Of a stretch of DNA of 64,000 bases, positions 3,084-31,372 are shown piece by piece. Location of the stretch: the IMG/VR virus record IMGVR_UViG_3300010885_025649, positions 1 to 64,000 of that record, one strand, 5' to 3'. Numbering within the stretch: position 1 is the first letter of the stretch; every line of letters begins with the position of its first letter. The position numbers were made by a program, and so were the translations under genes. Under the pieces are notes generated by a model. The model ran no database searches, was not told the DNA's origin, and saw nothing but the letters and a program-made list of their open reading frames with translations.

Positions 3084-4367
3084 ATGGCAAGTAATCAAGC
3101 GTTATCATTATCTGCAGGAGTATCTAGCAATACATCTAAGAATGCTCCATTCACTTCATCAGACCCCACCTTTAGAATATATAGAGGTGATCCTGATAGT
3201 GCTAATTGTGCAGATACTTATTTCTGGGAGATGGATGTATTACCTGCCATTACTCCAGCTAATACATTTTCAGGTGAAGGTACTAGAGTTCCTAATACAG
3301 AGGTTGGAATCTCTAGTAAAGTGCGCATGAGAGTGGCCACACAACCAATCATTGGTGGTACACCTATCAAGCAATCATTAGGCATTGAGGGCCAAATGAT
3401 GACCTTTGTAGGAGCCTTTTTAGGTAGAGGCCGGGATAGCAATAACTTTGTAGATCATGAGAATGCAGACGCTAATAGTTATACAGGAACAGGACCTAAT
3501 AAAGTTGCCTCTGATAGTTATACAAGTATGCAACTACAAAAGGTAACTGCAACTGCTGTTTATAATAAAATATCTACAAGTGCAGAAGCTTATTATACCG
3601 CAGAGCAGTTTAATAGTGAGATTGTTCTTCCCGGTAGAGAAGTAACGGTTATAATCACATATCCTATGTTAAAAGACATGGATTTAAATATAGCTTCATC
3701 TCCCGGGCGTGGAATTAGAATTAAAGCCACAGGTTATATAACCTCTATAGATTACATGCATGTAAGAGCCACAAGAACTTATTACAGATTTGTATTAGAT
3801 GTAACTAAATTCTATCCATCTAAGCGGCCATTAAGTTCTGGTACCCCTGAGCTTATACTCAGCCCGGAGAATAAACAGCAATCTTGTACATCTTTAATTA
3901 ATGCTCAGATAGCTTTAGTACAAGCACAAAGTAAATTATATAGTTTACAGACACAGTTAACGACAGCACAATCATCACTAGCAAATCTACAAACTGCTTT
4001 AAATAACTTCCCAACATCAGGGCAAGGATTACCCACTGAGAATTTAATAACCGATCCTAACTCAACTGTAGAATTATTACCAAATGCCCCTAACTTTACA
4101 GCCTCAACATTTACAGATACAACTCCTACAGATTCTATTAATCTACAAACAGCTAAGATAACTACAGCTTCGGCAAGTGTAGATAGTATTAATAAACAAA
4201 TAACAACTACACAAACATCAATAACAACTCTTATAAAAACTATCATACAAGAGAGTAAATCTTGTAGTATTTATGCAAGACCGATAACAAGTCCTGGAGA
4301 ACTACAAAAGCCGGCAAGATACACACCAGCTTCTAATGCTAGTCTCGTCCCAGATATTATAAGATAA
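3084..4367 (+). CDS. hypothetical virion-associated protein with C-terminal coiled coil
   Basis: 427 aa, strong SD (AGGAGAGG), heptad-like Q/L-rich segments. Confidence 0.6.
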   Translation: MASNQALSLSAGVSSNTSKNAPFTSSDPTFRIYRGDPDSANCADTYFWEMDVLPAITPANTFSGEGTRVPNTEVGISSKVRMRVATQPIIGGTPIKQSLGIEGQMMTFVGAFLGRGRDSNNFVDHENADANSYTGTGPNKVASDSYTSMQLQKVTATAVYNKISTSAEAYYTAEQFNSEIVLPGREVTVIITYPMLKDMDLNIASSPGRGIRIKATGYITSIDYMHVRATRTYYRFVLDVTKFYPSKRPLSSGTPELILSPENKQQSCTSLINAQIALVQAQSKLYSLQTQLTTAQSSLANLQTALNNFPTSGQGLPTENLITDPNSTVELLPNAPNFTASTFTDTTPTDSINLQTAKITTASASVDSINKQITTTQTSITTLIKTIIQESKSCSIYARPITSPGELQKPARYTPASNASLVPDIIR

Positions 4368-9472: not shown

Positions 9473-12400
9473 ATGGCTAGTACAAATGAACAATTAAGAG
9501 CACTAGGAATAACAGGGGAGGTATATAACACCTCCTCTCGTTCTAGTGTTCTTTTTACATCAAGAGGAACTAGCACAAAAGCATTTGATAGGTTACTAAC
9601 TAACGGCAATAAAATAACTAATGTATTACAATACCACATAAATCCTACAGGAGCATTAGGTGGAAAGCTAGTTAATAATGCTACTAATATTTATAGAGCA
9701 AATGATTATAATTCTAGACGCCACCCAGACAGTAGAATTAAACAAGTCCCTAATTATATAGAAGGACCAACTAGAGATAGTTATACTCACATTAAGTTGT
9801 ATGGGGGCACCAAGACTTCCATGTTCAGTACTTCAGGTGCTGGAGGTGGAAATACTCAAGACTTTGGAGAAGAGAGTGAGATAAACCTAAACTATATTTC
9901 TCCTAAGCTAAATAATCTAGAACGGACATTTGTTAAAGATTATTTAAGTGGCAATGCTAAAGATCAGTATCATGATAAAGATATAGCTTTATACTATCAA
10001 GATTATAAAACCCCTGGCATTAGTACAGAAGAAGCTAAGTTAATTAACGCTGCCCAAAAGGGTGACACTATTAATATAGGTAGTGCCACTTTAAGTAGTA
10101 ATAGTATTGTGGGTGCTGCACTAGAAGCTGCTTTAGCTAGGGGTGCACAAGTTAATATTGCTACTACCGTTGATGGAAGTAATACAACAACTACAGCAAG
10201 AACACTAAGTCACTATTCAAACTTAGGTGCAACAGTATTCCCTACTAATGTAGATGGAGTTATACTCCATGCTAACTTCTTAGGAATTAAATATAAGAAT
10301 AAACCTGAAGTAAGTTTAATAACTTCTTTTAGAGCAAGTGCTAAGGCTCAAAGTACTTATGGAGAAACTCAAACTAACCTAGCCATAGAACTCCATGGAG
10401 CAGAAGCTTCCAGTATTAATAAATATATAAATTCTGTATTATTCAAACCAGGAAATGGCCAAGCACCCAGTGCTGTAGGAATTGGTAATAGATTAGCTGA
10501 ACTGGGTAATTCAAATTATCTAAGCGCATTAGTTAATATGAGTGATGCAGTTAATGTTCTTTATACTATCCAAGCAGATATTAGTGGAGATTTATTAACC
10601 AGATATTACAGTGCTAATCAACAAGGATTAACTGGTAGAGCCAGACAGATATATTTAACTCAACCCATCTTTACTGGAGAGCCTGTAGCAGAACAGTTAT
10701 ATTATGTAACTAGAGGAAGTGCTGCTCCTAGTTACGTTAAGGTATTAGATACTATTAGAAGTAGTCCAACTATTTATAATGCTATTAATGGATTTGTGAA
10801 TCAAGCTGTAAGACCTAAAGATGAAACAGCTTTTGGGGCATTTGCTTTTGGCTTCTTAGGGGGACAAGGAGGATTCTTTAAAGGAAATGAGAATCCTATT
10901 CTATCTATATTAGCGGCACCAGCAAGAGGAATAGATAATCTATTCCGGACTCAACGAGCGCCTTTTAATAATGGTGTTTATGGAGCATTAATAGCAGGTA
11001 GCATTGGTTCTATTACTGCAGGAGTTATAGTAAGACAACGCTTTAATAATAATCTAGGATTTATAGCAGGAGCATTAATAGGGGGAAGTATTGGAGCAGC
11101 AATGAACCAAACTCCATCTAATATGTTTAGTACTCCTGGAGTTAAACTAATGGCATTAAACAAAGCTAATAAAGGAGATTTGCAAGATACTAATGCTCCC
11201 GGCCCAGCAGAAAGTCTTATTGGAAATCTATTTAATTCTGTACAATCTGTAGGATTATCCGCATTAATGTATGGAATACAATCTAGAATTGCACCTTTAG
11301 TAATGGATTATATATTCCAAAGCAGTGCTACTACTGCAGCTTTGATGAATAATATTAGTGAAGATCTAAGTAAAATGCCTCCGGGTACTTCTAATGTATC
11401 TAAATTCTTTAGAAGTATTGGAGTCTTTGGTGCTAAAAGTGTTGGACTTGTTAATACTATTGGTAACTTAAATAGTATTCGTAGAGGAATTGCTATTGGT
11501 AACTTAGGATTATATGGATCCTTTGCTAGAGATCTCTTTGGATTAGATATGTTAGTCCAATTAAATAGACCTATAGGTAATGCTACAGGAAATTATACTC
11601 ATGGAGTTGAAGTCTATCATAAAATAGGAGCTGAAAATCCTGGTGTTCTTATTAGACCAGGAGATGATTTTAGAGGTAAGTTAGATCCTATTTTAGATAA
11701 AGGTTATAATATCCAACTAAGTACAGTTTCAAGAGATCCTGAAATCTTACGTCAATATGGTAGAGGAATATTCCGGGAATCCAGTTCATCGGGGTTATTG
11801 GGAAGAGTTAATAAGAAAGTTATAGCAGAGGCGTTAAATACTATTCTAGACTTAAACTCCAGAATACATTTAAAAGATGGAACCTTTGGATTAGCACATA
11901 CTACTTATGGTAGAGCATTTGGTACAGTAGACCAAGAGTTAACCGGAGACTTAAATACACGATTAAATACTGATATTGAAAGCTTTATTAAAACACATCA
12001 TCCAACTGCTACCGTATTAGAAATAGCGGAAATAAAACGCAGGATAATATTTGGTAACGAAGTAGAGATAAATGGAAATAAAGTACGAGCACCAACTTAT
12101 CAATACCTTACTGAGGCTGGTATAGATAATATAGATAGATTGTTTGGATATTACAGACAAGGAATGAATATCTTAGGAGCTATTTATGTTAACCCCATGA
12201 TATTTGCTCTCGGGAACAAACCAAAAGATACTTCATTAACCATTAAGGATTTACTAGCTGCTATTCAAGAAGGAACCTCTAATGTATTTGGATTACCTTT
12301 AAACTTATTTGATAATGATGATAAGTTAAAAGCACTATTTAAAAGTAATAATGATGAGGGGCCTCTTAAATACTTTAGTAGTAAAGGCAAAGCCATTACT

Positions 12401-15400
12401 CAATTGTTTCTACAAGATGCTAGTAACAAAAGTATATCTGCAGACTTATCAACAAACTTAAATACTAATGATAGAGAGGTAAGATCACTAAGGGGATTCT
12501 TTGGTAAAGAATCTAGTGCGCTTGGAGAAAAGATAGCTTTATTAGGAGCTGAAAATAAATTAGCTCTTAGAGGATTAGCTGGATTAAAGTTATTAGGAAT
12601 GACACTACCACTTACTTTAGTAGGATTAGCTTTAGGAGATCAACCAGGAAACTCTTTAACTACAGCTACTACAATGTTATTTGATCAACTACAAAACGGA
12701 CCATCTCTATATGGATCTAAGCTATTAGGAGGTCTAGCAAAAGTAGGTGGAATTAATCAAGACTATTTTACTGGAGGTGTTAAACCCGCATTAGGGTTTA
12801 GTTTAAATCCATTTTATTTAAAGAGAGCAGGCATCGCCACAAATCCTAATGGAACTCCTTTAATGTATTCCGATGGTACCTATCAGTATGTAGATAAAGG
12901 AAGAGACTGGAAAGAAGATCTGCAATTAACTGGGCAATTATCTTTAGAAATTGGTGGAGGTCTTTTAGCTTATAATGCTATTAAACATGGAGTAGGATTA
13001 GCTACTGATTTAGCAGATTTAAAAGCAGGAGGTACTCGCAGCTTAGAAAGAATTATTGGGAGTAGATTAAATAGATTAGCTGGAGAAACTGTATTACCCG
13101 CATTAGCCTTACTTACCTTTGGAGCCGTAGATACGGCTGTGGATAGTCTAGTACAAAAGGTAAGTCCTTATGGAGTTAACTATGGCATGTCCTTTATGTT
13201 ACTTAGTGGTGTTGCTGGAGCAGGTATAGGAGCCGTATTTAATAAAGATTCAGGGCGTATTAAAGCAGGTGCTAAAGGGGCAGTTGGTGGATTATTACTG
13301 GGTGCGGTAGCAACCATGATTGCAGAGTTTGCTACTACATTAGGTGTAGATGCAATTAGAGGTGCCGCTGGATTAATCTCTGGAAGACCTATAGATGATG
13401 CAGTAATGAATAATACTGTAGAAGGTTCTCTAAGAAATACTTATAGATATGCTTTAAGTATTGGAGATATGGCAGGAGCTATTAGAGCTAGAGCAGAAAT
13501 GCAAAGTATGGGATTCTATATAGATAATTCTAATAGTAGATTAAGTCATTCTATAGCTACACAGTTAGGAACAACTCCGGTAGCACAAAATGCTATCTCT
13601 TTAAATATAGATAATAGTGGAGCAGTCATACCTACTCTTAGTTTCCAATTACCTTTATTAGGCTTTGGAGTTAATTTAGAATCACCTGTAAAGTTTGCCT
13701 TTAGATCTAACCAACAATTATTATTAGCTAGGGATCCAGATCAGAATTATAGTAAGGTATATGAAGGTGGTTTAGTATTACCACAACAATTAGGAATGCC
13801 TAATATGTTAGGTATGGGATTAGGAGCCATTGCTGGTATAGCAGCTAAAGGAGCCTTTACTAGATTCGGATTACCAGCAATAGTTCCAATGGCTCTTGGA
13901 GGACTTATTGGAGGATTTGGATTTAATGCTTATAACAGCCTTACTAATAAAGATAAACCAAAACAAGGAAGTCTAAGTATTGAATACAATTCTGGTAATG
14001 ATTTAGAGAAGTTAATGTTAGGTTATACAGCAATAGCTCCTATATTAGTAAGCAGTCAATTAATCAGTGGTGCTTTTATCAACACGGGTATTGGATTAGC
14101 TAATAGTTCCACAAATGAACTAGTACAAAAAGCTGGAGGTACTCTAATAGGTTTAGGATATAAAATAAGTACTAATCCTATAGTTAGCGCTGCTCGAATG
14201 ATGGGAGGGCACGCTAATAATTTAGTAGGTGGACAATGGGGATTATTTAATAATACTTATGGATTAATTAATAGAGACCGAGGAATTCCAGTTATCCCAT
14301 TAAATGATAAATTACCCGGGGGTAAAATTCCAGAAAGGTCCGTAACACATTTACCAGCATTCTTAGTAAAAGGTATAGGTAAAACAGTTAAGTATGCAGC
14401 AGCTTATATGTTATTATCTAACATGTTTGATTTAAATAAGACTATACCTTTAGGAAATGGTAATACAATACCCACATTATTTAGTCCTACAGCAGCCTTA
14501 ATTACAGGAACTTATGCTAGCTTAAAATACGGTCCTAGATTATTACCAGAAGGTAGTATAAAAGAGTTTGCTAATATTATTGGTGGAAGTAGAAGTAGAG
14601 CATTAACCTCTATGTTCGCTGTTATAGGGGCAACAGCATTATATACTTTAAGTGCACAAACCACAAATGGAATTCCAACACCAAGAAAGTCTGTAGCAGC
14701 ATTAAATAACATTGCAAGTATTCCTTTTATAGGAAACCCTCTAGCTAAGATAACTGACTTCTTCTATGGAGTTAGTAGAAATGCATCTATACAAGATAGA
14801 TACACAGTTATCCCTACAGTATTTGGAGGAATTCGTACAGGAACAAATACCAATTCATTACTTACCGGAGATTTTGGAAGTCCTATTGTAAGAAAGCGTG
14901 GTGGTGCTGGTCTTATTACTTCTGATATAACCACAGCATTAAGTTCAGGATCTTTTAGTGGATTATTATATTTAGGTGCTGCCCAGAACACTACATTAAC
15001 TATTACAGGTAATCAAGGATCTAGTTTTACTAAAATGGGCAATTACACATTACCCAGAAATAGCTATGTGCAGATGATTTTCCAAGGAGCAGATTTATCT
15101 TATGCCTATAACTTATTACCCAGCGGAGATAAAGCACAAAAACAAAGAGCATTAGCTAGATTTAATGTAATCAAAAATGCTGGCCCTAATCCTAAGAACA
15201 TATTAAAGGCATTAAATACGCAACGCCCCGGATTCAGTCAGCAAGATTATAGAACTAGTTCCCCATTATTTAGTTCAGCTACTTTAAAAGCAGTTCATTC
15301 TGAGTTAATATTAGCTGCATTAAAACAGCGGCAATTTGTCACTGAATATATCTTAAAGAATCCTTCTGAGGATATCACAAGTTATTTAGATAGTTTAGGT

Positions 15401-18400
15401 GTAGATAAAATGCTTAATGGGATAGGTGCTTTAAGTAAGCAAGTCATCCTACCTGTGCGCGGTAACTTCTACTGGAACAGAACTGCTGTAGGAGGCCCTG
15501 TAGGAGCCGGCCCAACAGGACATCCCTATTTTATTGGTGGTGGGGAAGTAGATACCAGTGCTCAATTAACCTTACAGAACTTTAATTATAATAGTTTACA
15601 AACTGTACAAAATGCCGCGGCTAATGATAAAGCATTAACTATATTTAATCTTGGATTAATAAGTCTTAGTGGATTAATATTAGCAGGACCTTTACTGGGT
15701 AATCTATTTACTAATGCCTCTAGAAGAACAAATATTGATAGATACGTGGCTGAAGGTGGTGGTCAGCGTTCTATGATTAACATAGGAGCTTATAATACAG
15801 AGCGGGGAGGCAACCAATTATTAGCAAAAGTAGCCTTATCTGGTGCTGGGGATAGTAATCTGGGTACTTTAGCTTATCTTGGGGGCTTACCTATTTATCA
15901 TACTGATGTTATACCAGGTAGTTATAAAACCGCATATGACAACGTTTCAAAGAATATATCAGAATTATATGTGGGAGACGCGCAACGAAAGCTTAATACT
16001 ATAGACAGAAATAACATCGCTTCAGTTAAAGAGTTTGCTGAATTAATCCATGGAAAGCTAACAGACTTACGTAACTCAATGTTCACAGGCTCTGAGAATA
16101 TTACGAATGAATTAAACGCACGGCCGGATATTGTAGCTAAATTTGATCCACATAGAGATAGAAATAGATTAGCTAAAATATCTGAATTAGATAAAGTATT
16201 AGCCGGATTACGAGCTGATATAGATTCCGCAGTAGATCCGCATAGATTATTAGAAAAGACTCTAAGCCGTAGAGAGCCATTTAGAGATGTAAGTGCTGCG
16301 GGGGTATTTAAACTGATGGGCTTTGAAGTAGACCCGGGTGGTAATACTTTAGCCAGAATGGCTACATGGTTTGGAGAACGAATTCCAGGAGCTAAAAGTA
16401 TATATGATTTTATCCGCCCTAATAAATTAACCAAGGCAGCTAGAGCAGAAGATCCTCTAAGACTACACACTATGAGTAGTGCAGAATCTGATCGGATATT
16501 AAACGGTTTAGGTGTTAAAGAAAGCGAGCGGATTAAAGCTAGTATCTTTACAGATGTGGAAAATCAAGTAGCCGGGAAAACCGCATTAAGGATTATGGGA
16601 AGTACTGGTGCAGGTGTTATTGGAACCTTACAGAACTTAGCTATTACAAGTATGTTCTTAGATGTTGGGGATAGTAGGCGCAGTATGGTTTATAGAGAAA
16701 ACCAAGCAACAACAGCGCTTGAAACCACTTCTTTATTCTTAGGTACTCATATGGCTACTCAAGTATTAACTACTGGAGGAAAAGCCGCATATGAATTAGC
16801 TACTACTGGAACAATGAATAGAGTAGGATTAGTCGCTATGTTTGCCAACCCTGAAGTAAGTTGGCTCCCCGGCCTTTTTATAGCCGGTGCCACCATGTTT
16901 GGTCCAACAGTATTAGACTGGATGGATCATATGGGTGTACCCGGGATTAAAGGCTTCAAACAAGGTGTAGGAAGTAATCTAGAACGTGCTGCTAATTGGG
17001 CAGATAAAGGATTAAATACTAACCAAAGTGTAGGGAGTACTTCTTTAGGATTCGCGGCATTAACAGCCTTAACTATCTTTACTGCAGGTGGAGGTTTCAT
17101 TGCTGCGGGAGTGGCCGGAGGTGTAGTTGCAGCCGCTAACTCTTTAGCTAATAAAGGTACTAAGGCTACCCCTGCCCAACAATTAGCTAATACTCTTCAA
17201 GCAATACAGAATATTCCTGGAATTGGTCCTAATGTTATAAGACCTATATGGGAAAAAGCTAATGACTTATTTGAGAGTACTTATCAAACTTTAGCAAATC
17301 AAATTAGAGGAGGCTTACAAGCAGATCCTAAGAGTTTCTGGTGGGGTGTTGCTGAAGGAATAGTAGAAGGTTCTTCTGGAAGAAATCTATTTGAGGATAG
17401 AACTAAAATAAACAGTGCTCAGAGTATGTTCTTAAGTGGTTATTATAGAGGTTCTCCACTATTCAGTGTTAATAATAGAGACTATAAAGCTTTAGGATAT
17501 GACGCTAACTACCAGAAGTTCCTAGCAGATACACATGAGCAGGAACAAAGTAGATTAAACACAGACACATTAATTAGCACAAGAATATTACACAAGACTG
17601 TATTAAACGGTATAGCATATTCTGGAGATTATCAAGATGAAGTCTTTGCTAATAGATTAATGGGAGGAAGTCAAGGAAGAATCTTTACTAAAGGTAGTAG
17701 AGCTATAGATAATCTATTAATGCTTTCTATTACTAGTAGAGCAGAAGATACTCAATGGGTATTTGGATCTGTATATAACCGAGCTGTAGAAAGAGAAACT
17801 ATTAAGAATAGTGGTGTAGCTATAGGAGCTATGCTACTACCTACATTAGGTGCTATGGCTACGCTAGGTGGTGCTGGCTATATAGCCAGCAGAGCAGCTA
17901 AGCGAGGTCGTCCACCAAGTTCAGGAGGTCTTACTGAACCTGAGGCACCAAAACCTAATCTACCTGATCCACCTAATCAAGGAGTTCTATTAGAAGAGAG
18001 GCCTGCATCACAAAGAAGAGTATTAACTCAAGCGGAGCAAACTCATGACTTCTTAATATGGCGTAATGAAACTGCTGAAGGTAAAATTGCATATAAGAAT
18101 CATGGCGTACATGCTAGGGGTATATATAATAAATTATATGGAGTTACGGGGCATCAATCTAGTGAGGCTTATGTAAAACCTTTAATGGGTAATGAGGCCC
18201 AGCATGATTATAGGCTATGGTTACAAACTGCTGAAGGTAAAGCCGCCACTATAGAAGGCAAAGGTAGTTTTGATGATTACTTTGACTTGTTTGGATTTAA
18301 AGGTCATCAACCTAAACCTAGTCCACAACCAGTAATACAAAATAAGTTAAATCCAGAGCAGTACTTAGAGTCAGCAAAGCTTGCAGCTACTCGCCCCTCA

Positions 18401-21400
18401 GTTCAAGGTCCTGCAAAGAATCCTACAACTAGTCCATTAAGCACTCCTACTGCTCCATTAGCAGCGCCTATTAGTACTCCTGTAGCACCAGTAGTTAATC
18501 AATTACAGCCGCCAAGTGATGTCACAACAACTCCTTTAACACTAGAAACAACTCCACATACACCAATCACTAATAGAAGATCATACACTTTGGGAGAGCA
18601 TACACAAGGATTAGGAGGTTTAGTACTCGGGGTAGGTTTAGTTGCTACTGCTTGGTCTTTTAGAGAAGCTCAAATGACTAACTTTAAAGACACAGATGCT
18701 GATACAAATCTCTTTATTAGTTCAGCAGGAGTAGCAACACAACTTCTGGGAGGTAAAGCAGGAGTAATTGGTAATACCATTTTAGGTATAGGTATGATTG
18801 GACTACAAGCTAAAGTTGCTGCAGAGAACCAATGGAAGAATCAAGAAGCTAATGCAAATGTAGTAGGAATTGGAAGTAATATATTAGGTAACTTAGCTGG
18901 ATTTACTGCTTTAAGTGCAGTGGCAGAAGGTTTAGGAGGAGTAGCTGGTATAGCTGCAGGAGTGGGAGCAACAACAGGATTAGCAGCAGCAGCCGTCCCA
19001 ATAGCAATTGGTGCAGCAATATTAGGCGGCGCCGCACTTATAGGGGCAACAGCAGAGTGGATTGGAAAAGGAATATATAATAATGTAACCAAACCACAGC
19101 CCGTATCACAGGTCTCAAAACCAGTTACAGTTAGTAATAAATATGTTAATGTGGCCCCTGTATATAAAAATCCAGTTAGTAATAATATACAAGTAGATAA
19201 AACCAATACTGATTATATTAGTGTATATCATTCTAATAGAAGCCCAGTAAGTACAAGAGTGCATTTAGCTAATACTGGTAGTCCACCTATTAGTGATTAT
19301 GTTGGTATGTATCATTCTAATAGAAGTCCTATAAGTAGTAAATTAAGTCTACCTAAACCTGTTCCACATATAGCAGAGTATGTAAGTAAGTACTCGTCTA
19401 GTAGAAGTCCTATTAGTAGTAAACTGCCTTTAACTAAAGTTACTAGTTCACCAATTATCAAATATCAATCTACTAGAAACCCAACCAGTACTAGAATAAA
19501 TCTATCAAATCCTATTAGCAGTTTTATTGATAGACCAGCTCACTTTAATAATCTTAATCCCGCTGAATATGTAAGTAAATATGTATCAAATAGAAGTCCT
19601 ATTAGTACTAAAATTAATCAACACAAAACTAATACTTTAGGTTCAGTTAGTAATACAAAACATATTAATACCAATCCATATTATGCAGTGATTGCTCATG
19701 TAGATGATGATAGAATAAATAGTAATCTTATAGATACAAGACAACTAACATCTTTAAACCAACTTAAGGAAACTTTAGTTAGTATCAAACATAAAGCTAA
19801 TGGACAACATGTAATATTAGATTTAGATACTCATGGTATAGAAGGAAGAGGCTTCGCATTTACAAAAACTGCGCATGGTAAGACTACAGTTAGCGCAATG
19901 TCTGCTAAATATCTTAATAGACAATTGTATGAAGCTGGGTTTAAGAAAGATGACATCACAGTTATTTTAGAAACTTGTAATGCTTATTTCTCTTATAATA
20001 GTTCAAAGAGTGGATTCAAAGCTACTTCAAAAAGTGATATTGAAAAAGCAGAATCTAGAATAAATTCTAGTAAAGCTACAGCTACCTTATTAGACACTAA
20101 TAAAGAAACACCCATAGAGTATAAAATGTATGGGCGCCGGTCAGGTAATTACGAATACTTAGCATTAGCACAATATGTAGGAAATGTAGAATTACAGGGT
20201 CCAGCTAATAGAACAGAGATTGTTGAAGTGCATGGAAATTATAAAGGCTCTGTAGATACCAACTATCCACTGACGTTCCTAAATATACACGATCAAATAA
20301 TCGCAAGTATAAATTCAAACTATATTGAACAATATCCTTCTGGCAGAAGCCCTGTAAGCACAAAGCACAGTAAAAATATATTCCAAAATATCTTTGAGTT
20401 CTTCTTCGGTAAGCCTGTTGCAGCAGATACTTTAAAGGATCCAAGTAATTGGTTAACTAATAGTCAATACACAGCATTAACCAAAACTGCAGGCGCTAGT
20501 AAATTAGAGCAGAGAGTTAATAAGAGTCTACCTGCATTAAATACTAAAGGAACGCCTCTACAAAGTATTCAGAAGAAACCTAATACATTAGACTATATAC
20601 AATCCGCTACTATGAACTTCTTTGATCAGATAAAAGAAGACTTTAATTATATTCTAAATAGAGTTGGTAGTGGTTTAAATAAAATAGGTAATGGAATTGG
20701 CCATGCTATTTCTAATTCAGTAGATGGTATTGGAAAACTATTCGGCAAAAGCTCACAAACCTTTGACCAACAATCCCCAACGTTAATGGCAAATCTTATG
20801 AGAGATTTCAGTCTCACAAAGGAACAAGCCGCGGGAATAGTAGGTAACTTAGGTCATGAGTCTGCGGGGTTACAAGCAGGTATACATCACATTGGATCTA
20901 CAAGCAGTAATGCGGGTATAGGTTGGGCACAATGGGTTGGACCCAGACGTAAAGCCTTTGAGCAATACTTAACTATGACCAATCAAAAGGCTACTGATGC
21001 AAATGCCAATTACGGCTTCTTAAAGCAGGAATTAATGGGGCAATACAGAAGTGCCATTAAAGAAGTCAGAAAGCAATCTACCGTACACAACTCCATGGTT
21101 GTATTCGAGAAGATTTACGAAGGGGCTGGTATAAAGAATTATGCTAGCAGAGAAAGATATGCTAACCGCGCTTTAGCTACATTGGGTAGTATATCTACCA
21201 CAGCAACAGTTAGTAATAATTCAGAAGCACTATTCCCTATAGTTGGGTACAGCTCTTTAACAGCTCCTGTAAGAGGTCAATTTGGTACCCAGAGGCCCGG
21301 GCATGTACACCAAGGTACTGATTATGGTATCCCAGTAGGAACAGGCCTTGTAGCCCCATTAAACGCCACTGTAAGTGAAGCCGGAAGTAATTCCAGTATG

Positions 21401-22201
21401 GGTACTTACATTAGATTAAAAGCATTAGATAATTCCGGTAGAGCTATTAAATATACCTTTATGCACTTATCTCAACTAGATGTACATAAGGGTGAACAAG
21501 TAGTAGCAGGACAGGAAATAGGTAAAAGTGGTAACTCCGGACATAGTACAGGAGCACACGTCCATATAGAAGTACAGCAAGGTAACTTGAATATAGATCC
21601 GGCAGCATATTTTGGTAAGCGCGCTGGAGTAAGTAAAGTAGCACAAGTTGTGCCTAAAGGGGAAACAAAGACTAGTAATAGTAACCAAACCCAAAGTGCT
21701 ATTGATCCTTATACCGGACAGTATAGAGGAGAAGTATATGATGGAAATACTTTAAACAGTATTAAAAGATATGTACCAACCGGTAGAGGCTATAAGTTAG
21801 ATATCCTTAATGGTTCTGAAGTAGTAGTTATAACAGATGCTAATAATAATACACAGCATCAGCATATTAATTTAGATATGAAACCTAAAGTTAATATGAG
21901 TGTAATGTCACCCACTATAGTAAGTCCAGTTAAAGCTACTCCTATAACCCCTACTAAGAAGAATAAAGTAAAGACTACTATTAAAGTAGTAGTTACACCA
22001 ACTTGTTATAAGGAGGAGATGATTAGTAGAGGGCAGATACAATTAGATACAGCTAAATCTCCTACTCCAATAAGTCATAGTGCTAAGGCTGTCATAGTAG
22101 TAAATAAAGATGGAAAGGCCAATCAAGTTATGCATGAAGAAAGAGCCACTGAATTAACAATGGCTCAATGCGGGATCCCCAATTTTCAATACAGAGCTTA
22201 A
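9473..22201 (+). CDS. giant (4242 aa) tape-measure/ejection-type virion protein with PLD-like, multi-TM, putative clan-CD protease, phage lysozyme-2 and M23 peptidase domains
   Basis: HIK at 9788 and LHAN at 10268 in a PLD-fold context. Many Gly/Ala hydrophobic helices. VILDLDTHG...VILETCN. QAAGIVGNLGHES...GWAQW (lysozyme-2 family). HQGTDYG...FMHL...STGAHVH (M23). Confidence 0.8.
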   Translation: MASTNEQLRALGITGEVYNTSSRSSVLFTSRGTSTKAFDRLLTNGNKITNVLQYHINPTGALGGKLVNNATNIYRANDYNSRRHPDSRIKQVPNYIEGPTRDSYTHIKLYGGTKTSMFSTSGAGGGNTQDFGEESEINLNYISPKLNNLERTFVKDYLSGNAKDQYHDKDIALYYQDYKTPGISTEEAKLINAAQKGDTINIGSATLSSNSIVGAALEAALARGAQVNIATTVDGSNTTTTARTLSHYSNLGATVFPTNVDGVILHANFLGIKYKNKPEVSLITSFRASAKAQSTYGETQTNLAIELHGAEASSINKYINSVLFKPGNGQAPSAVGIGNRLAELGNSNYLSALVNMSDAVNVLYTIQADISGDLLTRYYSANQQGLTGRARQIYLTQPIFTGEPVAEQLYYVTRGSAAPSYVKVLDTIRSSPTIYNAINGFVNQAVRPKDETAFGAFAFGFLGGQGGFFKGNENPILSILAAPARGIDNLFRTQRAPFNNGVYGALIAGSIGSITAGVIVRQRFNNNLGFIAGALIGGSIGAAMNQTPSNMFSTPGVKLMALNKANKGDLQDTNAPGPAESLIGNLFNSVQSVGLSALMYGIQSRIAPLVMDYIFQSSATTAALMNNISEDLSKMPPGTSNVSKFFRSIGVFGAKSVGLVNTIGNLNSIRRGIAIGNLGLYGSFARDLFGLDMLVQLNRPIGNATGNYTHGVEVYHKIGAENPGVLIRPGDDFRGKLDPILDKGYNIQLSTVSRDPEILRQYGRGIFRESSSSGLLGRVNKKVIAEALNTILDLNSRIHLKDGTFGLAHTTYGRAFGTVDQELTGDLNTRLNTDIESFIKTHHPTATVLEIAEIKRRIIFGNEVEINGNKVRAPTYQYLTEAGIDNIDRLFGYYRQGMNILGAIYVNPMIFALGNKPKDTSLTIKDLLAAIQEGTSNVFGLPLNLFDNDDKLKALFKSNNDEGPLKYFSSKGKAITQLFLQDASNKSISADLSTNLNTNDREVRSLRGFFGKESSALGEKIALLGAENKLALRGLAGLKLLGMTLPLTLVGLALGDQPGNSLTTATTMLFDQLQNGPSLYGSKLLGGLAKVGGINQDYFTGGVKPALGFSLNPFYLKRAGIATNPNGTPLMYSDGTYQYVDKGRDWKEDLQLTGQLSLEIGGGLLAYNAIKHGVGLATDLADLKAGGTRSLERIIGSRLNRLAGETVLPALALLTFGAVDTAVDSLVQKVSPYGVNYGMSFMLLSGVAGAGIGAVFNKDSGRIKAGAKGAVGGLLLGAVATMIAEFATTLGVDAIRGAAGLISGRPIDDAVMNNTVEGSLRNTYRYALSIGDMAGAIRARAEMQSMGFYIDNSNSRLSHSIATQLGTTPVAQNAISLNIDNSGAVIPTLSFQLPLLGFGVNLESPVKFAFRSNQQLLLARDPDQNYSKVYEGGLVLPQQLGMPNMLGMGLGAIAGIAAKGAFTRFGLPAIVPMALGGLIGGFGFNAYNSLTNKDKPKQGSLSIEYNSGNDLEKLMLGYTAIAPILVSSQLISGAFINTGIGLANSSTNELVQKAGGTLIGLGYKISTNPIVSAARMMGGHANNLVGGQWGLFNNTYGLINRDRGIPVIPLNDKLPGGKIPERSVTHLPAFLVKGIGKTVKYAAAYMLLSNMFDLNKTIPLGNGNTIPTLFSPTAALITGTYASLKYGPRLLPEGSIKEFANIIGGSRSRALTSMFAVIGATALYTLSAQTTNGIPTPRKSVAALNNIASIPFIGNPLAKITDFFYGVSRNASIQDRYTVIPTVFGGIRTGTNTNSLLTGDFGSPIVRKRGGAGLITSDITTALSSGSFSGLLYLGAAQNTTLTITGNQGSSFTKMGNYTLPRNSYVQMIFQGADLSYAYNLLPSGDKAQKQRALARFNVIKNAGPNPKNILKALNTQRPGFSQQDYRTSSPLFSSATLKAVHSELILAALKQRQFVTEYILKNPSEDITSYLDSLGVDKMLNGIGALSKQVILPVRGNFYWNRTAVGGPVGAGPTGHPYFIGGGEVDTSAQLTLQNFNYNSLQTVQNAAANDKALTIFNLGLISLSGLILAGPLLGNLFTNASRRTNIDRYVAEGGGQRSMINIGAYNTERGGNQLLAKVALSGAGDSNLGTLAYLGGLPIYHTDVIPGSYKTAYDNVSKNISELYVGDAQRKLNTIDRNNIASVKEFAELIHGKLTDLRNSMFTGSENITNELNARPDIVAKFDPHRDRNRLAKISELDKVLAGLRADIDSAVDPHRLLEKTLSRREPFRDVSAAGVFKLMGFEVDPGGNTLARMATWFGERIPGAKSIYDFIRPNKLTKAARAEDPLRLHTMSSAESDRILNGLGVKESERIKASIFTDVENQVAGKTALRIMGSTGAGVIGTLQNLAITSMFLDVGDSRRSMVYRENQATTALETTSLFLGTHMATQVLTTGGKAAYELATTGTMNRVGLVAMFANPEVSWLPGLFIAGATMFGPTVLDWMDHMGVPGIKGFKQGVGSNLERAANWADKGLNTNQSVGSTSLGFAALTALTIFTAGGGFIAAGVAGGVVAAANSLANKGTKATPAQQLANTLQAIQNIPGIGPNVIRPIWEKANDLFESTYQTLANQIRGGLQADPKSFWWGVAEGIVEGSSGRNLFEDRTKINSAQSMFLSGYYRGSPLFSVNNRDYKALGYDANYQKFLADTHEQEQSRLNTDTLISTRILHKTVLNGIAYSGDYQDEVFANRLMGGSQGRIFTKGSRAIDNLLMLSITSRAEDTQWVFGSVYNRAVERETIKNSGVAIGAMLLPTLGAMATLGGAGYIASRAAKRGRPPSSGGLTEPEAPKPNLPDPPNQGVLLEERPASQRRVLTQAEQTHDFLIWRNETAEGKIAYKNHGVHARGIYNKLYGVTGHQSSEAYVKPLMGNEAQHDYRLWLQTAEGKAATIEGKGSFDDYFDLFGFKGHQPKPSPQPVIQNKLNPEQYLESAKLAATRPSVQGPAKNPTTSPLSTPTAPLAAPISTPVAPVVNQLQPPSDVTTTPLTLETTPHTPITNRRSYTLGEHTQGLGGLVLGVGLVATAWSFREAQMTNFKDTDADTNLFISSAGVATQLLGGKAGVIGNTILGIGMIGLQAKVAAENQWKNQEANANVVGIGSNILGNLAGFTALSAVAEGLGGVAGIAAGVGATTGLAAAAVPIAIGAAILGGAALIGATAEWIGKGIYNNVTKPQPVSQVSKPVTVSNKYVNVAPVYKNPVSNNIQVDKTNTDYISVYHSNRSPVSTRVHLANTGSPPISDYVGMYHSNRSPISSKLSLPKPVPHIAEYVSKYSSSRSPISSKLPLTKVTSSPIIKYQSTRNPTSTRINLSNPISSFIDRPAHFNNLNPAEYVSKYVSNRSPISTKINQHKTNTLGSVSNTKHINTNPYYAVIAHVDDDRINSNLIDTRQLTSLNQLKETLVSIKHKANGQHVILDLDTHGIEGRGFAFTKTAHGKTTVSAMSAKYLNRQLYEAGFKKDDITVILETCNAYFSYNSSKSGFKATSKSDIEKAESRINSSKATATLLDTNKETPIEYKMYGRRSGNYEYLALAQYVGNVELQGPANRTEIVEVHGNYKGSVDTNYPLTFLNIHDQIIASINSNYIEQYPSGRSPVSTKHSKNIFQNIFEFFFGKPVAADTLKDPSNWLTNSQYTALTKTAGASKLEQRVNKSLPALNTKGTPLQSIQKKPNTLDYIQSATMNFFDQIKEDFNYILNRVGSGLNKIGNGIGHAISNSVDGIGKLFGKSSQTFDQQSPTLMANLMRDFSLTKEQAAGIVGNLGHESAGLQAGIHHIGSTSSNAGIGWAQWVGPRRKAFEQYLTMTNQKATDANANYGFLKQELMGQYRSAIKEVRKQSTVHNSMVVFEKIYEGAGIKNYASRERYANRALATLGSISTTATVSNNSEALFPIVGYSSLTAPVRGQFGTQRPGHVHQGTDYGIPVGTGLVAPLNATVSEAGSNSSMGTYIRLKALDNSGRAIKYTFMHLSQLDVHKGEQVVAGQEIGKSGNSGHSTGAHVHIEVQQGNLNIDPAAYFGKRAGVSKVAQVVPKGETKTSNSNQTQSAIDPYTGQYRGEVYDGNTLNSIKRYVPTGRGYKLDILNGSEVVVITDANNNTQHQHINLDMKPKVNMSVMSPTIVSPVKATPITPTKKNKVKTTIKVVVTPTCYKEEMISRGQIQLDTAKSPTPISHSAKAVIVVNKDGKANQVMHEERATELTMAQCGIPNFQYRA
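19226..20365 (+). repeat. six copies of an 11-aa repeat Y-x-S-x-R-[SN]-P-[IVT]-S-[ST]-[KR] inside the giant protein
   Basis: In-frame copies start at 19226, 19310, 19391, 19463, 19580 and 20333. Confidence 0.9.
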
Positions 22202-23544
22202 AGTCCTTGTTTAAGGAGACCTAATAAATCAGGAGTTTCCTTAAGAGCTTTAAGAGCGGCGACCTTTCTATCTAAAGGTACTCCTTCCATATAATCAATA
22301 GTTCTAGTTAAGAACTTATCAAGTTTATCTTTTCTGGCAACTCTTTCAGTAATATCTAAAGCTTGTTTAAGAATCGATCTAAGCTCTTTAAAGAAAGTTA
22401 ATAAGATTTCATTAATATCTGCACCTTTATTAGTTAAAGTAGACTTCTCATCAAACTTAATATTAGGATCATTTAATAATTGTTCTAAATAGTTATAAAC
22501 ATTATCATAACTATCTTGTAAATTATTAATAATATTAAAGACATCTCGCTGATGATACATCAATTTAAACTTATCTGGTAAAGATCTATAATAAGCCAAC
22601 CAAGTATTTATAGAATTAGATGAAAGTCTTAATTGCTCCCCAATATTAATATTAGATATATGCAAGCTTTTTAATCTCAGCACTTCTGCGCCAAGACCAA
22701 GATTCTCAACAACAACTGCTTCACCATAAGGTTTAGGTTTAATATCAGAATCACCTACTAATTGATTAGCAACTCTAGGATCAGGAACACCTTGTATACC
22801 ACTAGGAATAACATAAGCATTAGTAAGCTCTAAAGACTTTTCTATAGGTGCTGGATTATAAGATACTCCTGGAGGTGTTATATGTAATGACTGCTCTGTA
22901 TTAGATTTAATATAAGACAAAACCTCCAGTTTAATTCCTGGGATTTCTGTATCTAATACATCCAGCATATTCTCCATACACTGTTCAACACGATTAATCT
23001 CATCTAGTTTAACAATAACTTTATCTGCTAAATCATAAATAGCTCTAATCTCTTCTTGATATTTAAGCCAAAGTTGCGGGCGCGTAAGACCAAATTGATC
23101 TTGAATAACTTCAGTTCTATACTTTAACATAAGAACTAATTGAGTTAGGCGCTCGCCAAATTCTTGTATATTTTGTCCTCTCACAAACATTCTCCGATAA
23201 CAGTAGGGGATATCCCACCATCTTTTATAATAGCGTAAATCTCTAAATGAATGTGGATTATCAAATCTAATAGTAGTATATTCAGGAGCACCTATAACAG
23301 CCCAGTTATAAATAGTTTCTATCGGTACTGGATAGTTATATGGATAGCGCTTTTTATCTAAGCGTTTACCAATAAGAGGCCACCATTCAACCATTCTCCA
23401 ACTATCACCATATAACCTAAATGGGCGGCGCCTAACAAACCTTTTATTCCTATCAACTTGAGTAGATATAGGATCATGTAATGCACGATCCTTTTTAGTC
23501 CACTTAAGTTGTTTATTTAATACACCACTTCTAAGTAGGCCCAT
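22198..23544 (-). CDS. hypothetical protein with HTH-like segment and coiled coils
   Basis: 448 aa. ISNINIGEQLRLSSNSINTWL is HTH-like. Its stop overlaps that of the convergent giant gene (shared TTAA). Confidence 0.55.
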   Translation of the reverse strand: MGLLRSGVLNKQLKWTKKDRALHDPISTQVDRNKRFVRRRPFRLYGDSWRMVEWWPLIGKRLDKKRYPYNYPVPIETIYNWAVIGAPEYTTIRFDNPHSFRDLRYYKRWWDIPYCYRRMFVRGQNIQEFGERLTQLVLMLKYRTEVIQDQFGLTRPQLWLKYQEEIRAIYDLADKVIVKLDEINRVEQCMENMLDVLDTEIPGIKLEVLSYIKSNTEQSLHITPPGVSYNPAPIEKSLELTNAYVIPSGIQGVPDPRVANQLVGDSDIKPKPYGEAVVVENLGLGAEVLRLKSLHISNINIGEQLRLSSNSINTWLAYYRSLPDKFKLMYHQRDVFNIINNLQDSYDNVYNYLEQLLNDPNIKFDEKSTLTNKGADINEILLTFFKELRSILKQALDITERVARKDKLDKFLTRTIDYMEGVPLDRKVAALKALKETPDLLGLLKQGL

Positions 23545-28570: not shown

Positions 28571-31372
28571 TTACCCCTCACATCCACAACTATCCACGGG
28601 TAGCGATGTATCCACAGTTAAAACCGGAGCTGAGTCACCCACATCAATCATTTGTCTTGCTGCCACTCTAGTAGCACTATCAGCATCTGCTGCAGATTCT
28701 CCATAAGTATAATAGATGGTAGCTAAGCCTCTATCATATGCAGCCATGTGAGTATTATGAATTTGCTGACCAGAATAAGCTCCGGTATTCTTATCTTTAC
28801 TAAAGAATAGATCTACTGATTGCCCTTGATCTAACCATTCTTGTCTCTTTGCAGCTTGATTAATAATAGCAATAGGATTAATTTCCCAAGGAGTCTTAAA
28901 GACTTCTTTCTCTAAATCACTTAATTGATGGATATGTTGGATACTTCCACCACCACCATTATCTAATAGACTATTAAGTAATGATTGTGAGTAAATTCCT
29001 TTAGCTTTTAGTAATTGTATTAATACAGGGTTCTTAACTATAAACGCGCCTTTAGCACTAAAGTCAGCATAGTAATTACCTATTGGTTGAATACCATAAC
29101 TAACTTGTCCACTAATAATTGCATTAGTTCTTGTAGGAGCAATAGCTAATAAACTACCATTACGTCTACCAGTACCTTTAAGCCATTCAGGTTCCCCATA
29201 CTCTTTAGCTAAATCCTTAGTAGCTATATCAGCATTCTGTCTAATAAACTTCATGATGTTATTAGTATAGCCAACTGCAGCAGGGGATTCAAAGGGGACT
29301 AACTTCTGTTGTAAGAATGTATGCCAGCCTAGAATTCCTAATCCTAGTGCTCTTGATTTAACCGCGCCAAGATAAACTCTTTCAAATCCGGGTAGATCTT
29401 TAGCAAGTTCCAGCCATTCTTCCATAACGGCATCCAGGAACCAAATTGCTAATTGAACTACAGTGGGATCATCTTTCCATTCATCATACTTAGCTACATT
29501 TAGAGAACTTAATACACATACGTAAGAGTGTTTATCATCATTAGGCAGGATTATTTCCGTACAGTTAGAACTAAGTAATCCAATAGATAAAGCAAACATG
29601 TGTGTTGTATTTACAGTAGTACAATACACATCTTGTTTATCTTCTAGTAATTCTACAGCTTTAACTTTATTAAATTTGCACTTAGCATTATATCCTGTAA
29701 GATCTCTAAAAGAAACTAATCTAGTAAAGGTTACAAGCTTCGCTAATTTTCTAGCTGCAACAGATGAAATAGTTAATCTCCAAGAGTCTTTACATAAATA
29801 CTCACCATACCCATCATTAAAATCTTTAAGGCCCTCTTTATTAGCAACACTAATAGTAGAATTAACTCCTAAAGTTTTAAGAAGAGTTTGTAAATCATAT
29901 AGAAAACTCTTATGAATTGAACCAAGTTGATAACCATAACTTCCTGAGGATTGCATTGCACAACCATCAGCATCAAATAAGCCAGCAATAAACTCACATT
30001 TACTTACCAGATCCCACTCAAAGACTTCTTGCGGCAACTTAACTTTGTTAGTAGTAGTCCAAGGATATAACTCATCTTTCCTAGCAGAAAGCCCTTGCAT
30101 ATTCTTTCTATTATCAGTAGAGGTTTTAAACCCTAATTCATCTATTTGATTAGTGACAGATTGTTTAGGTTTTATTTCTTCTGCAGAATCAATAAGTCTT
30201 TGCATGCAACTATATTTAGTATCATATAACCATAGCAAAGGTCTATCATCAATATGAGTCCCATCCCCACACAAGAAGCCTTTTATATAAGCTCCTTCTG
30301 TAGTTTTATTGCCATGACTTTCTTGAGTATGGCTTAGTAATTTAGTTCCAACTTTAATATCTTTAGCTAGTATCTTAGTACCATCTTCCAAAAAGAACCC
30401 ATGATCTAAAGTACAATCAACATATGAATTATCAGCTAAAGTAATTCGCATTACTTCTACATTCTGTTCAATAAGTTTAAATTGATCATTAGTTACCCAA
30501 CTATTACCATCAAAGATTGTCACAGTTTTATTAACTAAATCCTTAATAGGAAAACTACCTAAAGAGGTTGTAACTTTAGTATCTCCTGTCAAACACAGGT
30601 TAGTATTATTAAACCTTAATCCTGCATCTTTATACCATTGAGGTAGAATCCTATTAGCATTACCACTAAAAGTCTTATAAGGTTGAGAGAATTGTACACT
30701 AGTAGTTAAAGTCTTAAGCCATAAACTAACTGCTTCAGAATCACTATTCTTAACTCTCTGCATAAATTCATCAGTGAATAATGCAGAGTGATTTAGATTA
30801 CCACAGAAGGTACTAATATCCCCTTTAGGCTGTCTAATATTAAGGAACTGTAAGTAATCACCATGTTCAACATTTAAGGTAGCCTGATAAGCGCCACGTC
30901 TAACAGATCCTTGAGAGCAAGCATAAGTAGTACTATCAGCAATCTTTAACCAAGGAATAACTCCACCAGAGGTACCATTAATACCACCTCTAATAGGAGT
31001 ACCTGCAGGTCTAACTCCAGACCAATCATACCCAACAGCACCGCCGCCTTTAGTTAAAGCCGCGAATTCATTAAAGCTATCAAAGATACTACCCGGACCA
31101 TTAAGGGTATCACCTACAACAGAACCGTAGCATGACGCTGGCAAGCCTCTATTAGTACCAAAGTTAGTTAATACTGGAGTAGCAGGACAGAGCCAACCCA
31201 TCCACAGTATATGAAATATCTTCTCTTCTAATTCTGGCTTCTTTAATCTTTTAGCGGCGGTAGCGGCTAGTCTTCTATACATATCACGGGGAGTTTCCCC
31301 CTTCATTAAATAACCATTATTTAATACTTGAGAGCCATCCCGGGTTAACCACACGGGTGAAGTTTGAATCAT
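28571..31372 (-). CDS. nrdA: class I ribonucleotide reductase alpha subunit (no ATP cone), intein-containing; mature about 589 aa
   Basis: PATPVLTN, PASC, GSVRRGA, TNL|CTEI, LGLG, AIAPT, DQGQS, IYY, C-terminal CGCEG. Confidence 0.95.
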   Translation of the reverse strand: MIQTSPVWLTRDGSQVLNNGYLMKGETPRDMYRRLAATAAKRLKKPELEEKIFHILWMGWLCPATPVLTNFGTNRGLPASCYGSVVGDTLNGPGSIFDSFNEFAALTKGGGAVGYDWSGVRPAGTPIRGGINGTSGGVIPWLKIADSTTYACSQGSVRRGAYQATLNVEHGDYLQFLNIRQPKGDISTFCGNLNHSALFTDEFMQRVKNSDSEAVSLWLKTLTTSVQFSQPYKTFSGNANRILPQWYKDAGLRFNNTNLCLTGDTKVTTSLGSFPIKDLVNKTVTIFDGNSWVTNDQFKLIEQNVEVMRITLADNSYVDCTLDHGFFLEDGTKILAKDIKVGTKLLSHTQESHGNKTTEGAYIKGFLCGDGTHIDDRPLLWLYDTKYSCMQRLIDSAEEIKPKQSVTNQIDELGFKTSTDNRKNMQGLSARKDELYPWTTTNKVKLPQEVFEWDLVSKCEFIAGLFDADGCAMQSSGSYGYQLGSIHKSFLYDLQTLLKTLGVNSTISVANKEGLKDFNDGYGEYLCKDSWRLTISSVAARKLAKLVTFTRLVSFRDLTGYNAKCKFNKVKAVELLEDKQDVYCTTVNTTHMFALSIGLLSSNCTEIILPNDDKHSYVCVLSSLNVAKYDEWKDDPTVVQLAIWFLDAVMEEWLELAKDLPGFERVYLGAVKSRALGLGILGWHTFLQQKLVPFESPAAVGYTNNIMKFIRQNADIATKDLAKEYGEPEWLKGTGRRNGSLLAIAPTRTNAIISGQVSYGIQPIGNYYADFSAKGAFIVKNPVLIQLLKAKGIYSQSLLNSLLDNGGGGSIQHIHQLSDLEKEVFKTPWEINPIAIINQAAKRQEWLDQGQSVDLFFSKDKNTGAYSGQQIHNTHMAAYDRGLATIYYTYGESAADADSATRVAARQMIDVGDSAPVLTVDTSLPVDSCGCEG
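29564..30595 (-). mobile_element. intein (344 aa) with LAGLIDADG endonuclease in NrdA
   Basis: Starts CLTGDTKV and ends LSSN before the catalytic Cys (NL|...|CTE). Block B TLDH; motifs GFLCGDG and FIAGLFDADG. Confidence 0.93.

Follow-up and report, generated by a model that had tools for sequence, protein, structure and literature searches.

A candidate caspase-fold cysteine peptidase domain ahead of the cell-wall hydrolase module of a giant jumbo-phage protein

Introduction

Whether a phage protein of more than 4,000 residues can bring along the peptidase that processes it is the question raised by the locus described here. The locus lies in the first 64 kb (hereafter, the window) of the 212,497-bp IMG/VR contig IMGVR_UViG_3300010885_025649, which comes from an uncultured freshwater jumbo phage, and consists of an uninterrupted open reading frame (ORF) at 9473..22201 (+) that encodes a protein of 4,242 amino acids (aa). 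This giant protein is presumed to be a virion or ejection protein. An initial annotation of the window had noted five Arg-containing repeats ahead of an inserted domain and one behind it, a His codon at 19832 and a Cys codon at 19976 within the insert, 48 residues apart, and lysozyme and M23 domains downstream. Each of these observations was borne out: exactly six matches to the repeat were found by regular expression, the positions and spacing of His3454 and Cys3502 were correct in every detail, and Pfam recognized both hydrolases.

The same annotation had interpreted the insert as a clan CD peptidase within a self-cleaving polyprotein. We propose, tentatively and with slightly less than even confidence, that aa 3403-3569 of the giant protein represent a new and very rare family of caspase-fold (clan CD-like) cysteine peptidases, which would use a His3454/Cys3502 dyad and serve as a built-in releasing peptidase.

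A rare domain with an invariant His/Cys pair

The central features of the locus, in window coordinates, are as follows:
19679..20179 (+): core of the His/Cys domain, aa 3403-3569, defined by profile match, with a predicted caspase/hemoglobinase-like α/β fold
19832..19834 (+): codon CAT of His3454, candidate general base, which follows the strand at aa 3447-3452 and is itself followed by Gly
19976..19978 (+): codon TGT of Cys3502, candidate nucleophile, two residues past the strand at aa 3495-3500 and followed by the invariant Asn3503

Relatives of this domain are scarce. An exhaustive HMMER search with the 233-aa insert, run against 1.84 billion representative proteins, returned four non-self relatives and no more (E 7e-13 to 6e-06), of which three (P0002, P0003, and P0004) are stand-alone proteins of 317-382 aa and the fourth, P0005, is a second giant protein of 4,652 aa. 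Eight further stand-alone relatives (324-411 aa) came from a profile search. The contigs that encode P0002 and P0003 are too short to be informative about gene context. Among 185,579 species-representative genomes, a bacterial-only alignment identified a single carrier, a Candidatus Sericytochromatia metagenome-assembled genome (MAG), and a single-protein query of the same collection found nothing. The family alignment, when run against IMG/VR and the JGI metagenomes, recovered only this phage's own two assemblies, and in word-indexed protein searches neither the giant protein (region 3240-3640) nor P0005 (region 3500-4060) found anything but itself. GenBank phages likewise gave no match, either by megablast of 17000-22500 or by tblastn with the His/Cys domain, with the first 2,999 aa, or with both P0005 domain copies.

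The candidate dyad, picked out initially from one sequence, is invariant in all 15 domains that were aligned, as are Ser3477, Asn3503, Gly3514, and Asp3541. The Gly that follows the His (Gly3455) is present in 14 of the 15, and the residue before the Cys is always small (G in ten, T in two, A in two, and S in one). Strands rich in Val, Leu, and Ile precede both the His-Gly and the small-Cys motifs. Two further positions are predominantly acidic, namely that of Glu3500 (12 E, 2 N, 1 D) and that of Asp3411 (13 D, 1 N, 1 E).

The Cys content of the giant proteins bears on the same point. The window protein contains three Cys residues (aa 3502, 4178, and 4233), where 50.6 would be expected from the window's other ORFs (Poisson P ~2e-18), and P0005 contains only two in 4,652 aa, at positions 3628 and 3972, each of which is the aligned Cys of a domain copy. 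This depletion, together with the identity of the only Cys residues in P0005, is strong evidence that the aligned Cys is functionally required. The depletion would also fit exposure to an oxidizing compartment. Taken together, these alignments indicate that the His/Cys pair is a genuine conserved feature.

The stand-alone homologs at L001 8001-9236 and L005 4001-5098 belong to the Candidatus Sericytochromatia MAG and related metagenome contigs. Past the domain, each of these proteins has a Pro/Ala-rich stretch that is flanked by two copies of a short motif with an Arg. In two contigs the stand-alone bacterial gene is adjoined by a MacB/OEP-type exporter and a T2SSE-like ATPase.

Predicted fold

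Known families did not account for the domain. Pfam, PHROG, and NCBIfam gave no match for the domain or its homologs, and Pfam remained without a match for the domain and any of 10 homologs even at E <= 10, including Peptidase_C80, C14, C11, and CHAT. Neither Pfam nor NCBIfam placed the sequence in families C14, C11, C13, C25, or CHAT. Searches of PDB sequences, with a single sequence and with a profile, produced chance-level matches only and no clan CD chain.

We turn to the AlphaFold models of the fragment encoded at 19655-20332. The second of these, which drew on 13 sequences that included both P0005 copies, P0002, and P0003, reached a mean predicted local distance difference test score (pLDDT) of 75.4 and a predicted template modeling score (pTM) of 0.76, with most of the surroundings of the dyad at 82-96. 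Its elements run in the order strand, strand, helix, strand-His, β-hairpin, helix, strand-Cys, helix, helix, strand-Asp, strand, helix. Specifically, in model numbering, the strand at 53-58 leads to His60, which is followed by a hairpin (67-73/76-82), a helix (84-93), the strand at 101-106, and Cys108; past Cys108 come two helices, the strand at 141-146, Asp147, and the strand at 157-161.

In clan CD peptidases, β3 has the catalytic His at its C-terminal end and β4, the next strand, has the catalytic Cys at the same end, with a small sheet and α3 in between (PMC4357240), and the clan is marked by a motif of the type His-Gly ... Ala-Cys, each part of which follows a hydrophobic strand (PMC12445089). 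The His-then-Cys order and the flanking motif types of the clan are both found in the sequence of the domain. Moreover, the predicted order of the central elements is that of caspases, β3-His-(small sheet on L3)-α3-β4-Cys-...-β5-β6 (PMC4357240).

Structural comparison points in the same direction. When the second model was compared with the PDB by Foldseek, caspase-fold chains made up the four best matches and 14 of the top 50, and the highest probabilities (0.98, 0.84, and 0.75) all fell on such chains. The caspase-fold matches comprised Raptor-containing entries, insect caspase-1, a Bacteroides C11 peptidase, caspase-3, caspase-6, and drICE; in Raptor, it is the N-terminal domain that is caspase-like. 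In BFVD, six proteins named as caspases or metacaspases were among the top 25 matches. As a control, the first model (10 mostly near-identical sequences, pLDDT 43.9) gave no caspase match in Foldseek.

Three features of the model count against a caspase fold. Caspase-1 has a six-stranded sheet of order 2-1-3-4-5-6 and five helices, and of these helices α1, which should connect strands one and two, appears to be missing from the model. The structural matches are weak, with best E values of 4.4e-3 (PDB) and 1.2e-3 (BFVD), a template modeling (TM) score of at most 0.37, and a root-mean-square deviation of ~9-11 Å. Other Rossmann-like folds (RecA/DMC1, isochorismatase, and esterase) are also interleaved among the PDB matches. 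The clan CD dyad and fold of the initial annotation are thus favored by the conserved dyad, the element order, and the caspase-fold neighbors that head the Foldseek results in both databases, and are held back by matches at E > 1e-3 and TM <= 0.37. Given these weak scores, the fold is likely rather than proven, and it is in this sense that we describe the domain as a probable caspase-fold His/Cys enzyme.

Some other Cys enzymes were considered and set aside. An isochorismatase-like or glutamine-amidotransferase-like Cys hydrolase would need a Lys, or a Cys ahead of the His, that the domain does not have; the sortase, DeSI, and Npro-type His-Cys clans have folds that are not α/β sandwiches.

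Domain layout and a syntenic ortholog

The His/Cys domain is set among the following features of the giant protein:
10037..10351 (+): weak PLD-like domain, aa 189-293 (Pfam PLDc_2, E 0.0069, 16.7 bits, under the cut-off)
18941..19054 (+): last two strongly hydrophobic 19-mers, aa 3157-3194 (Kyte-Doolittle scan), candidate membrane-inserting segments
19226..19612 (+): Ser/Pro-rich linker with repeats 1-5 (regular-expression search)
20333..20365 (+): repeat 6, immediately past the His/Cys domain (regular-expression search)
20789..21178 (+): Phage_lysozyme2, aa 3773-3902 (Pfam E 4.8e-22)
21305..21601 (+): Peptidase_M23, aa 3945-4043 (Pfam E 8.4e-19)

Ser and Pro make up 20.7% and 10.3%, respectively, of aa 3251-3395, and the segment from repeat 5 to repeat 6 spans 240 aa. 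Matches of the giant protein to the PHROG metallo-endopeptidase, endolysin, and tape-measure families are confined to the Peptidase_M23 stretch. A search with a profile hidden Markov model found no extra, degenerate copies of the His/Cys domain in the giant protein or in the other ORFs of the window. The hydrophobic segments suggest a membrane-anchored body, and the gene block in which the ORF stands, along with the types of hydrolase domain, points to the virion as its location; a virion or periplasmic setting is what we infer for the protein.

The second giant protein, P0005, is encoded on contig L002 (Logan contig SRR30923186_667486), which also carries DNA ligase, dUTPase, and PD-(D/E)XK genes. 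Gene order is kept between L002 3284-25674 and window positions 9473-36357, and four genes downstream of one giant gene have counterparts, at 25-38% identity, downstream of the other, with order and strand unchanged. On the basis of this synteny, the giant genes are positional orthologs in distantly related phages. By BLASTP, the His/Cys domain is the only part that the two giant proteins detectably share.

P0005 is arranged as a PLD-like N-terminus, hydrophobic segments, a Pro/Ser/Thr linker, two His/Cys domains in tandem (aa 3503-3701 and 3848-4046), Peptidase_M15_3, and SLT. Its last strongly hydrophobic segment (aa 3350-3368) lies just ahead of the linker and the first domain. In both proteins a linker separates the domain from the last hydrophobic segment ahead of it, and a pair of peptidoglycan hydrolases comes after it; these pairs differ (Phage_lysozyme2+M23 in the window protein, Peptidase_M15_3+SLT in P0005). 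The PLDc_2 match of P0005 occurs at the same relative place as that of the window protein and exceeds the cut-off (E 3.5e-08, 33.8 bits), so that the N-terminal PLD-like domain of the 4,242-aa protein is probably real, albeit divergent.

Arginine-centered repeats

The repeats conform to the pattern Y.S.R[SN]P[IVT]S[ST][KR], which matches the giant protein at aa 3252, 3280, 3307, 3331, 3370, and 3621. Five copies precede the His/Cys domain and one follows it:
19226-19258 (+): repeat 1
19310-19342 (+): repeat 2
19391-19423 (+): repeat 3
19463-19495 (+): repeat 4
19580-19612 (+): repeat 5
20333-20365 (+): repeat 6

The tripeptide R[SN]P is confined to these six sites in the 4,242-aa protein, and when the 64-kb window was searched in six frames, no further frame contained the 7-residue core of the motif. 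A narrower DNA pattern for the repeat, which assumes AGY codons for Ser, was found nowhere in the 212-kb contig outside the known sites, and a scan of IMG/VR matched this phage alone. Shuffled sequences with even one core match numbered 0 of 2,000 for the whole protein and 1 of 5,000 for the local 401 aa, which excludes chance as an explanation of the repeats. Five of the six share an upstream extension, Y-[IV]-x-x-Y. Between pairs of repeats, identity ranges from 33 to 80% at the residue level and from 53 to 82% at the base level; where residues agree, the codons often differ. Such divergence indicates that the repeats are old and maintained, with no recent duplication.

The phage and its gene neighborhood

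The large terminase gene (5016-6818, +) precedes the giant ORF, which belongs to a block of + strand genes. Among cultured phages, the closest relatives of this terminase come from Microcystis phages (Ma-LMM01 and MaMV-DC) and a Microcoleus phage, at 27-29% identity. These terminase relatives are hints of a cyanobacterial or related host. The window has a G+C content of 34%. A second assembly of the same phage, from another sample, is 99.95% identical. The source lakes are represented by samples 3300010885 and 3300009154. Over 9.7 kb it shows five base differences from the window, all of which fall within the last 270 codons of the giant gene (21405-21959, +); they amount to three amino-acid changes and one silent change, none of them inside the repeats or the His/Cys domain. 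The contig of this second assembly stops at window position 22226.

Elsewhere, the window encodes helicases, a DNA polymerase, an RNA ligase, and intein-bearing ribonucleotide reductase (RNR) genes, the latter as ORFs at 28571-31372 (-) and 31387-34215 (-). Within the large-subunit ORF (933 aa) lies an intein that carries a LAGLIDADG domain (Pfam matches to Intein_splicing and LAGLIDADG_3). In the small-subunit ORF (942 aa), the RNR match is split into three stretches and is accompanied by a sub-threshold intein-splicing match, on which grounds this ORF probably holds one or more inteins as well. Two adjacent ORFs at 61310-61843 (+) and 61853-62440 (+) both match phrog_1084, which identifies them as tandem paralogs; the second also matches a tail-fiber assembly family.

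Discussion

With respect to mechanism, the domain would act from its place between the last hydrophobic segment, with its low-complexity linker, and an exchangeable peptidoglycan-hydrolase module. The peptidase would cut the flanking linkers, either in cis or within the assembled particle, and cutting would free the lysozyme+M23 module, along with the peptidase itself, from the hydrophobic body. We infer catalysis, autoprocessing, and the cleavage site, and that the domain processes its own polypeptide is a possibility to which we give not quite an even chance. A built-in processing peptidase is favored because the domain holds the same position in both giant proteins and is kept where the lytic module has been exchanged, and because P0005 has two copies, which is the pattern of Zhang et al. 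(PMC3482391). The shedding of a C-terminal M23 domain from a phage protein has a precedent in the Tal proteins of lactococcal phages, where it occurs by proteolysis (PMC6115969).

In terms of specificity, the best candidate for P1 in this phage would be the invariant Arg of the six repeats. The positions predicted to line the S1 pocket are acidic, namely Asp3411, Glu3500 (Cys minus 2), and the invariant Asp3541, just past the next strand. In the Arg-specific MALT1, the S1 pocket contains Asp365, Asp462 (Cys minus 2), and Glu500, which lies on L5, the loop after β5 (PMC4357240). This correspondence, the invariant Arg at the center of each repeat, and the P1-driven nature of clan CD enzymes (PMC12445089) render Arg at P1 plausible by analogy. 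RgpB, for example, autoprocesses at two Arg residues of its flanking prodomain (PMC4357240).

Several observations speak against this scheme. The repeats are confined to this phage and are missing from P0005, in whose Pro/Ser/Thr linker the residue directly after Arg or Lys is Pro, which is poorly suited to P1′. What cleavage would gain from five tandem sites at intervals of 17-39 aa is not obvious: cuts at five places within 130 aa would free just tiny peptides, and docking or linker roles would fit the arrangement equally well. That the repeats are cleavage sites strikes us as doubtful. The residue at Cys minus 2 is Asn, not Glu, in two of the 15 aligned domains, and with ten of the 15 rows drawn from one bacterial clade the alignment represents ~6-7 independent lineages. 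Finally, no cargo domain to release was detected in the stand-alone bacterial homologs, and the ancestral role of the family may therefore have been cleavage in trans.

This last point leads to an alternative that we consider unlikely, though deserving of weight, in which a caspase-fold protease is carried with the giant protein and acts in trans on host or other phage proteins, the repeats being a flexible linker, docking sites, or spacer. The closest homologs are stand-alone proteins of 317-411 aa in bacterial chromosomal contexts, which means that the family can work without a polyprotein; moreover, in polymorphic toxins some of the caspase-like domains are themselves toxins (Zhang et al., PMC3482391), and the repeats are not conserved in P0005. 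A protease acting in trans does not, however, explain why the domain is internal, not terminal, in both giant proteins and stands exactly between hydrophobic body and lytic module, and the restriction of the repeat motif to this one protein, over the window and (as the narrower DNA pattern) over the 212-kb contig, means that the phage shows no other protein with this motif that could be a substrate in trans. The constant proximity of peptidoglycan hydrolases in the giant proteins (Phage_lysozyme2+M23 in one, M15_3+SLT in the other) might instead suggest a third cell-wall enzyme, that is, a cysteine amidase or endopeptidase whose substrates would be the stem peptides or cross-bridges of peptidoglycan. 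Virion lysins with several domains are common, and Cys depletion fits an extracytoplasmic protein. We nonetheless regard this explanation as improbable: the domain has no sequence or structure match to the CHAP, NlpC/P60, YkuD, or amidase families, its His-before-Cys order on consecutive parallel strands is unlike that of CHAP or NlpC/P60, its bacterial homologs have no evident signal peptide when inspected by eye, and we know of no caspase-fold peptidoglycan hydrolase.

It is also conceivable, at a rather remote level of probability, that a caspase-like architecture here serves other chemistry or none, either as a transpeptidase/ligase of the legumain or GPI-transamidase type that links at the repeats or as a Raptor-like scaffold. 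The best Foldseek matches are Raptor-containing entries, the caspase-like domain of Raptor is non-catalytic, and several repeats would suit attachment or docking points better than cuts. A pure scaffold is hard to reconcile with the invariant His, Cys, Asn, and Asp and with a Cys that is kept in otherwise nearly Cys-free proteins, and nothing specific supports ligation. As for the scarcely credible notion that the low-complexity sequence of a linker gave rise to the His/Cys motifs and the repeats by chance, the surrounding region is indeed compositionally biased, but this explanation is refuted by the shuffles, which essentially never yield the repeat, by homologs at E 7e-13 to 6e-06, by the invariant dyad, and by the confidently predicted fold.

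Returning to the releasing peptidase, we can set out its broadest form, in which our confidence is low. The new clan CD family would be the one conserved core of orthologous >4,000-aa proteins in a clade of freshwater jumbo phages whose terminase has distant relatives in Microcystis and Microcoleus phages, and cutting after Arg in the repeats would free interchangeable wall-degrading cargo from a membrane-inserting body. This would place the logic of polymorphic toxins in a phage particle protein, with stand-alone relatives of the peptidase in Sericytochromatia.

If the proposal is true, a rare sequence family (four non-self relatives in the 1.84 billion proteins searched) joins the caspase-fold peptidases, giant jumbo-phage proteins can carry a protease of their own whose processing deploys exchangeable wall-degrading modules, and the phage entry machinery becomes linked to a principle, that of the releasing peptidase, known from polymorphic and autoprocessing toxins. 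Should the domain act in trans or on the cell wall, it would still be a new enzyme family, but the account of a self-cleaving polyprotein would fall. If the proposal holds, one His, one Cys, and six Arg motifs provide a testable handle on the maturation of these opaque >4,000-aa proteins.

Comparison with known systems

The initial annotation had not recognized the proposed strategy as one already described. Releasing peptidases are, however, known from polymorphic toxins, where caspase-like examples (Tox-Caspase) lie directly upstream of variable C-terminal effectors and also occur as tandem copies (Zhang et al. 2012, PMC3482391). The listed phyletic range of Tox-Caspase includes Caudovirales and the phage-tail-like PVC systems (PMC3482391). 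Both giant proteins resemble this arrangement in having an internal His/Cys domain ahead of a distinct, exchangeable C-terminal enzymatic module, and P0005 resembles it further in its tandem copies. They differ in that the cargo consists of peptidoglycan hydrolases, without toxin/immunity pairs, and that the carrier is a jumbo-phage protein of >4,200 aa. In addition, no Pfam or NCBIfam model recognizes the domain, and RHS or other hallmarks of polymorphic toxins were not seen.

The C80 peptidases of MARTX and the large clostridial toxins, to which the initial annotation had likened the system, are also built-in His-then-Cys clan CD domains of very large multidomain proteins. C80 domains autoprocess at inter-domain linkers, and their dyad spacing is similar to that found here. 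They are activated by a eukaryotic cytosolic cofactor (inositol phosphate, bound in a basic pocket) and cut after Leu, whereas a eukaryotic cofactor and Leu specificity are a misfit with a phage of bacteria and an Arg-centered motif. As there was no Pfam C80 match at E <= 10, no NCBIfam match, and no C80 structure in the top 50 Foldseek matches, "MARTX-like" describes an analogy and not membership.

With MALT1, metacaspases, RgpB, clostripain/C11, and YabG (PMC4357240, PMC12445089), the domain shares the order His then Cys, the Gly after the His, and the small residue before the Cys; with MALT1 it also shares the predicted acidic residues at S1 positions (before β2, at Cys minus 2, and after β5). 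RgpB, C11, and YabG autoprocess at Arg residues flanking or inside the domain (PMC4357240, PMC12445089). Unlike these Arg/Lys-specific peptidases, to which it has no detectable sequence relation, the domain apparently lacks the helix after the first strand, and its specificity is a prediction.

Among phage proteins, the tail-associated lysins of Tuc2009 and TP901-1 (PMC6115969) are comparable as virion proteins that shed a C-terminal M23 hydrolase, in their case by proteolysis and here by proposal. Those lysins are without a dedicated protease domain and are unrelated in size and architecture. The polyvalent proteins of phages and plasmids, which are thought to travel with DNA and to be cut into units by their own zincin-like metallopeptidase (Iyer et al. 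2017, PMC5512222), are likewise large multidomain proteins with a peptidase domain of their own. Their peptidase is a metallopeptidase, in contrast to the Cys/His caspase-like domain described here, and none of their signature domains was detected in our protein; the word "caspase" is absent from the polyvalent-protein paper (PMC5512222).

Our literature search found no paper on a giant phage protein that combines a domain of the caspase type with peptidoglycan hydrolase cargo, and nothing on such a domain in tape-measure proteins or virion lysins. The general idea is already known from polymorphic toxins, MARTX-type toxins, and polyvalent proteins (PMC5512222); what is new is the sequence family and the setting in which a known principle appears.

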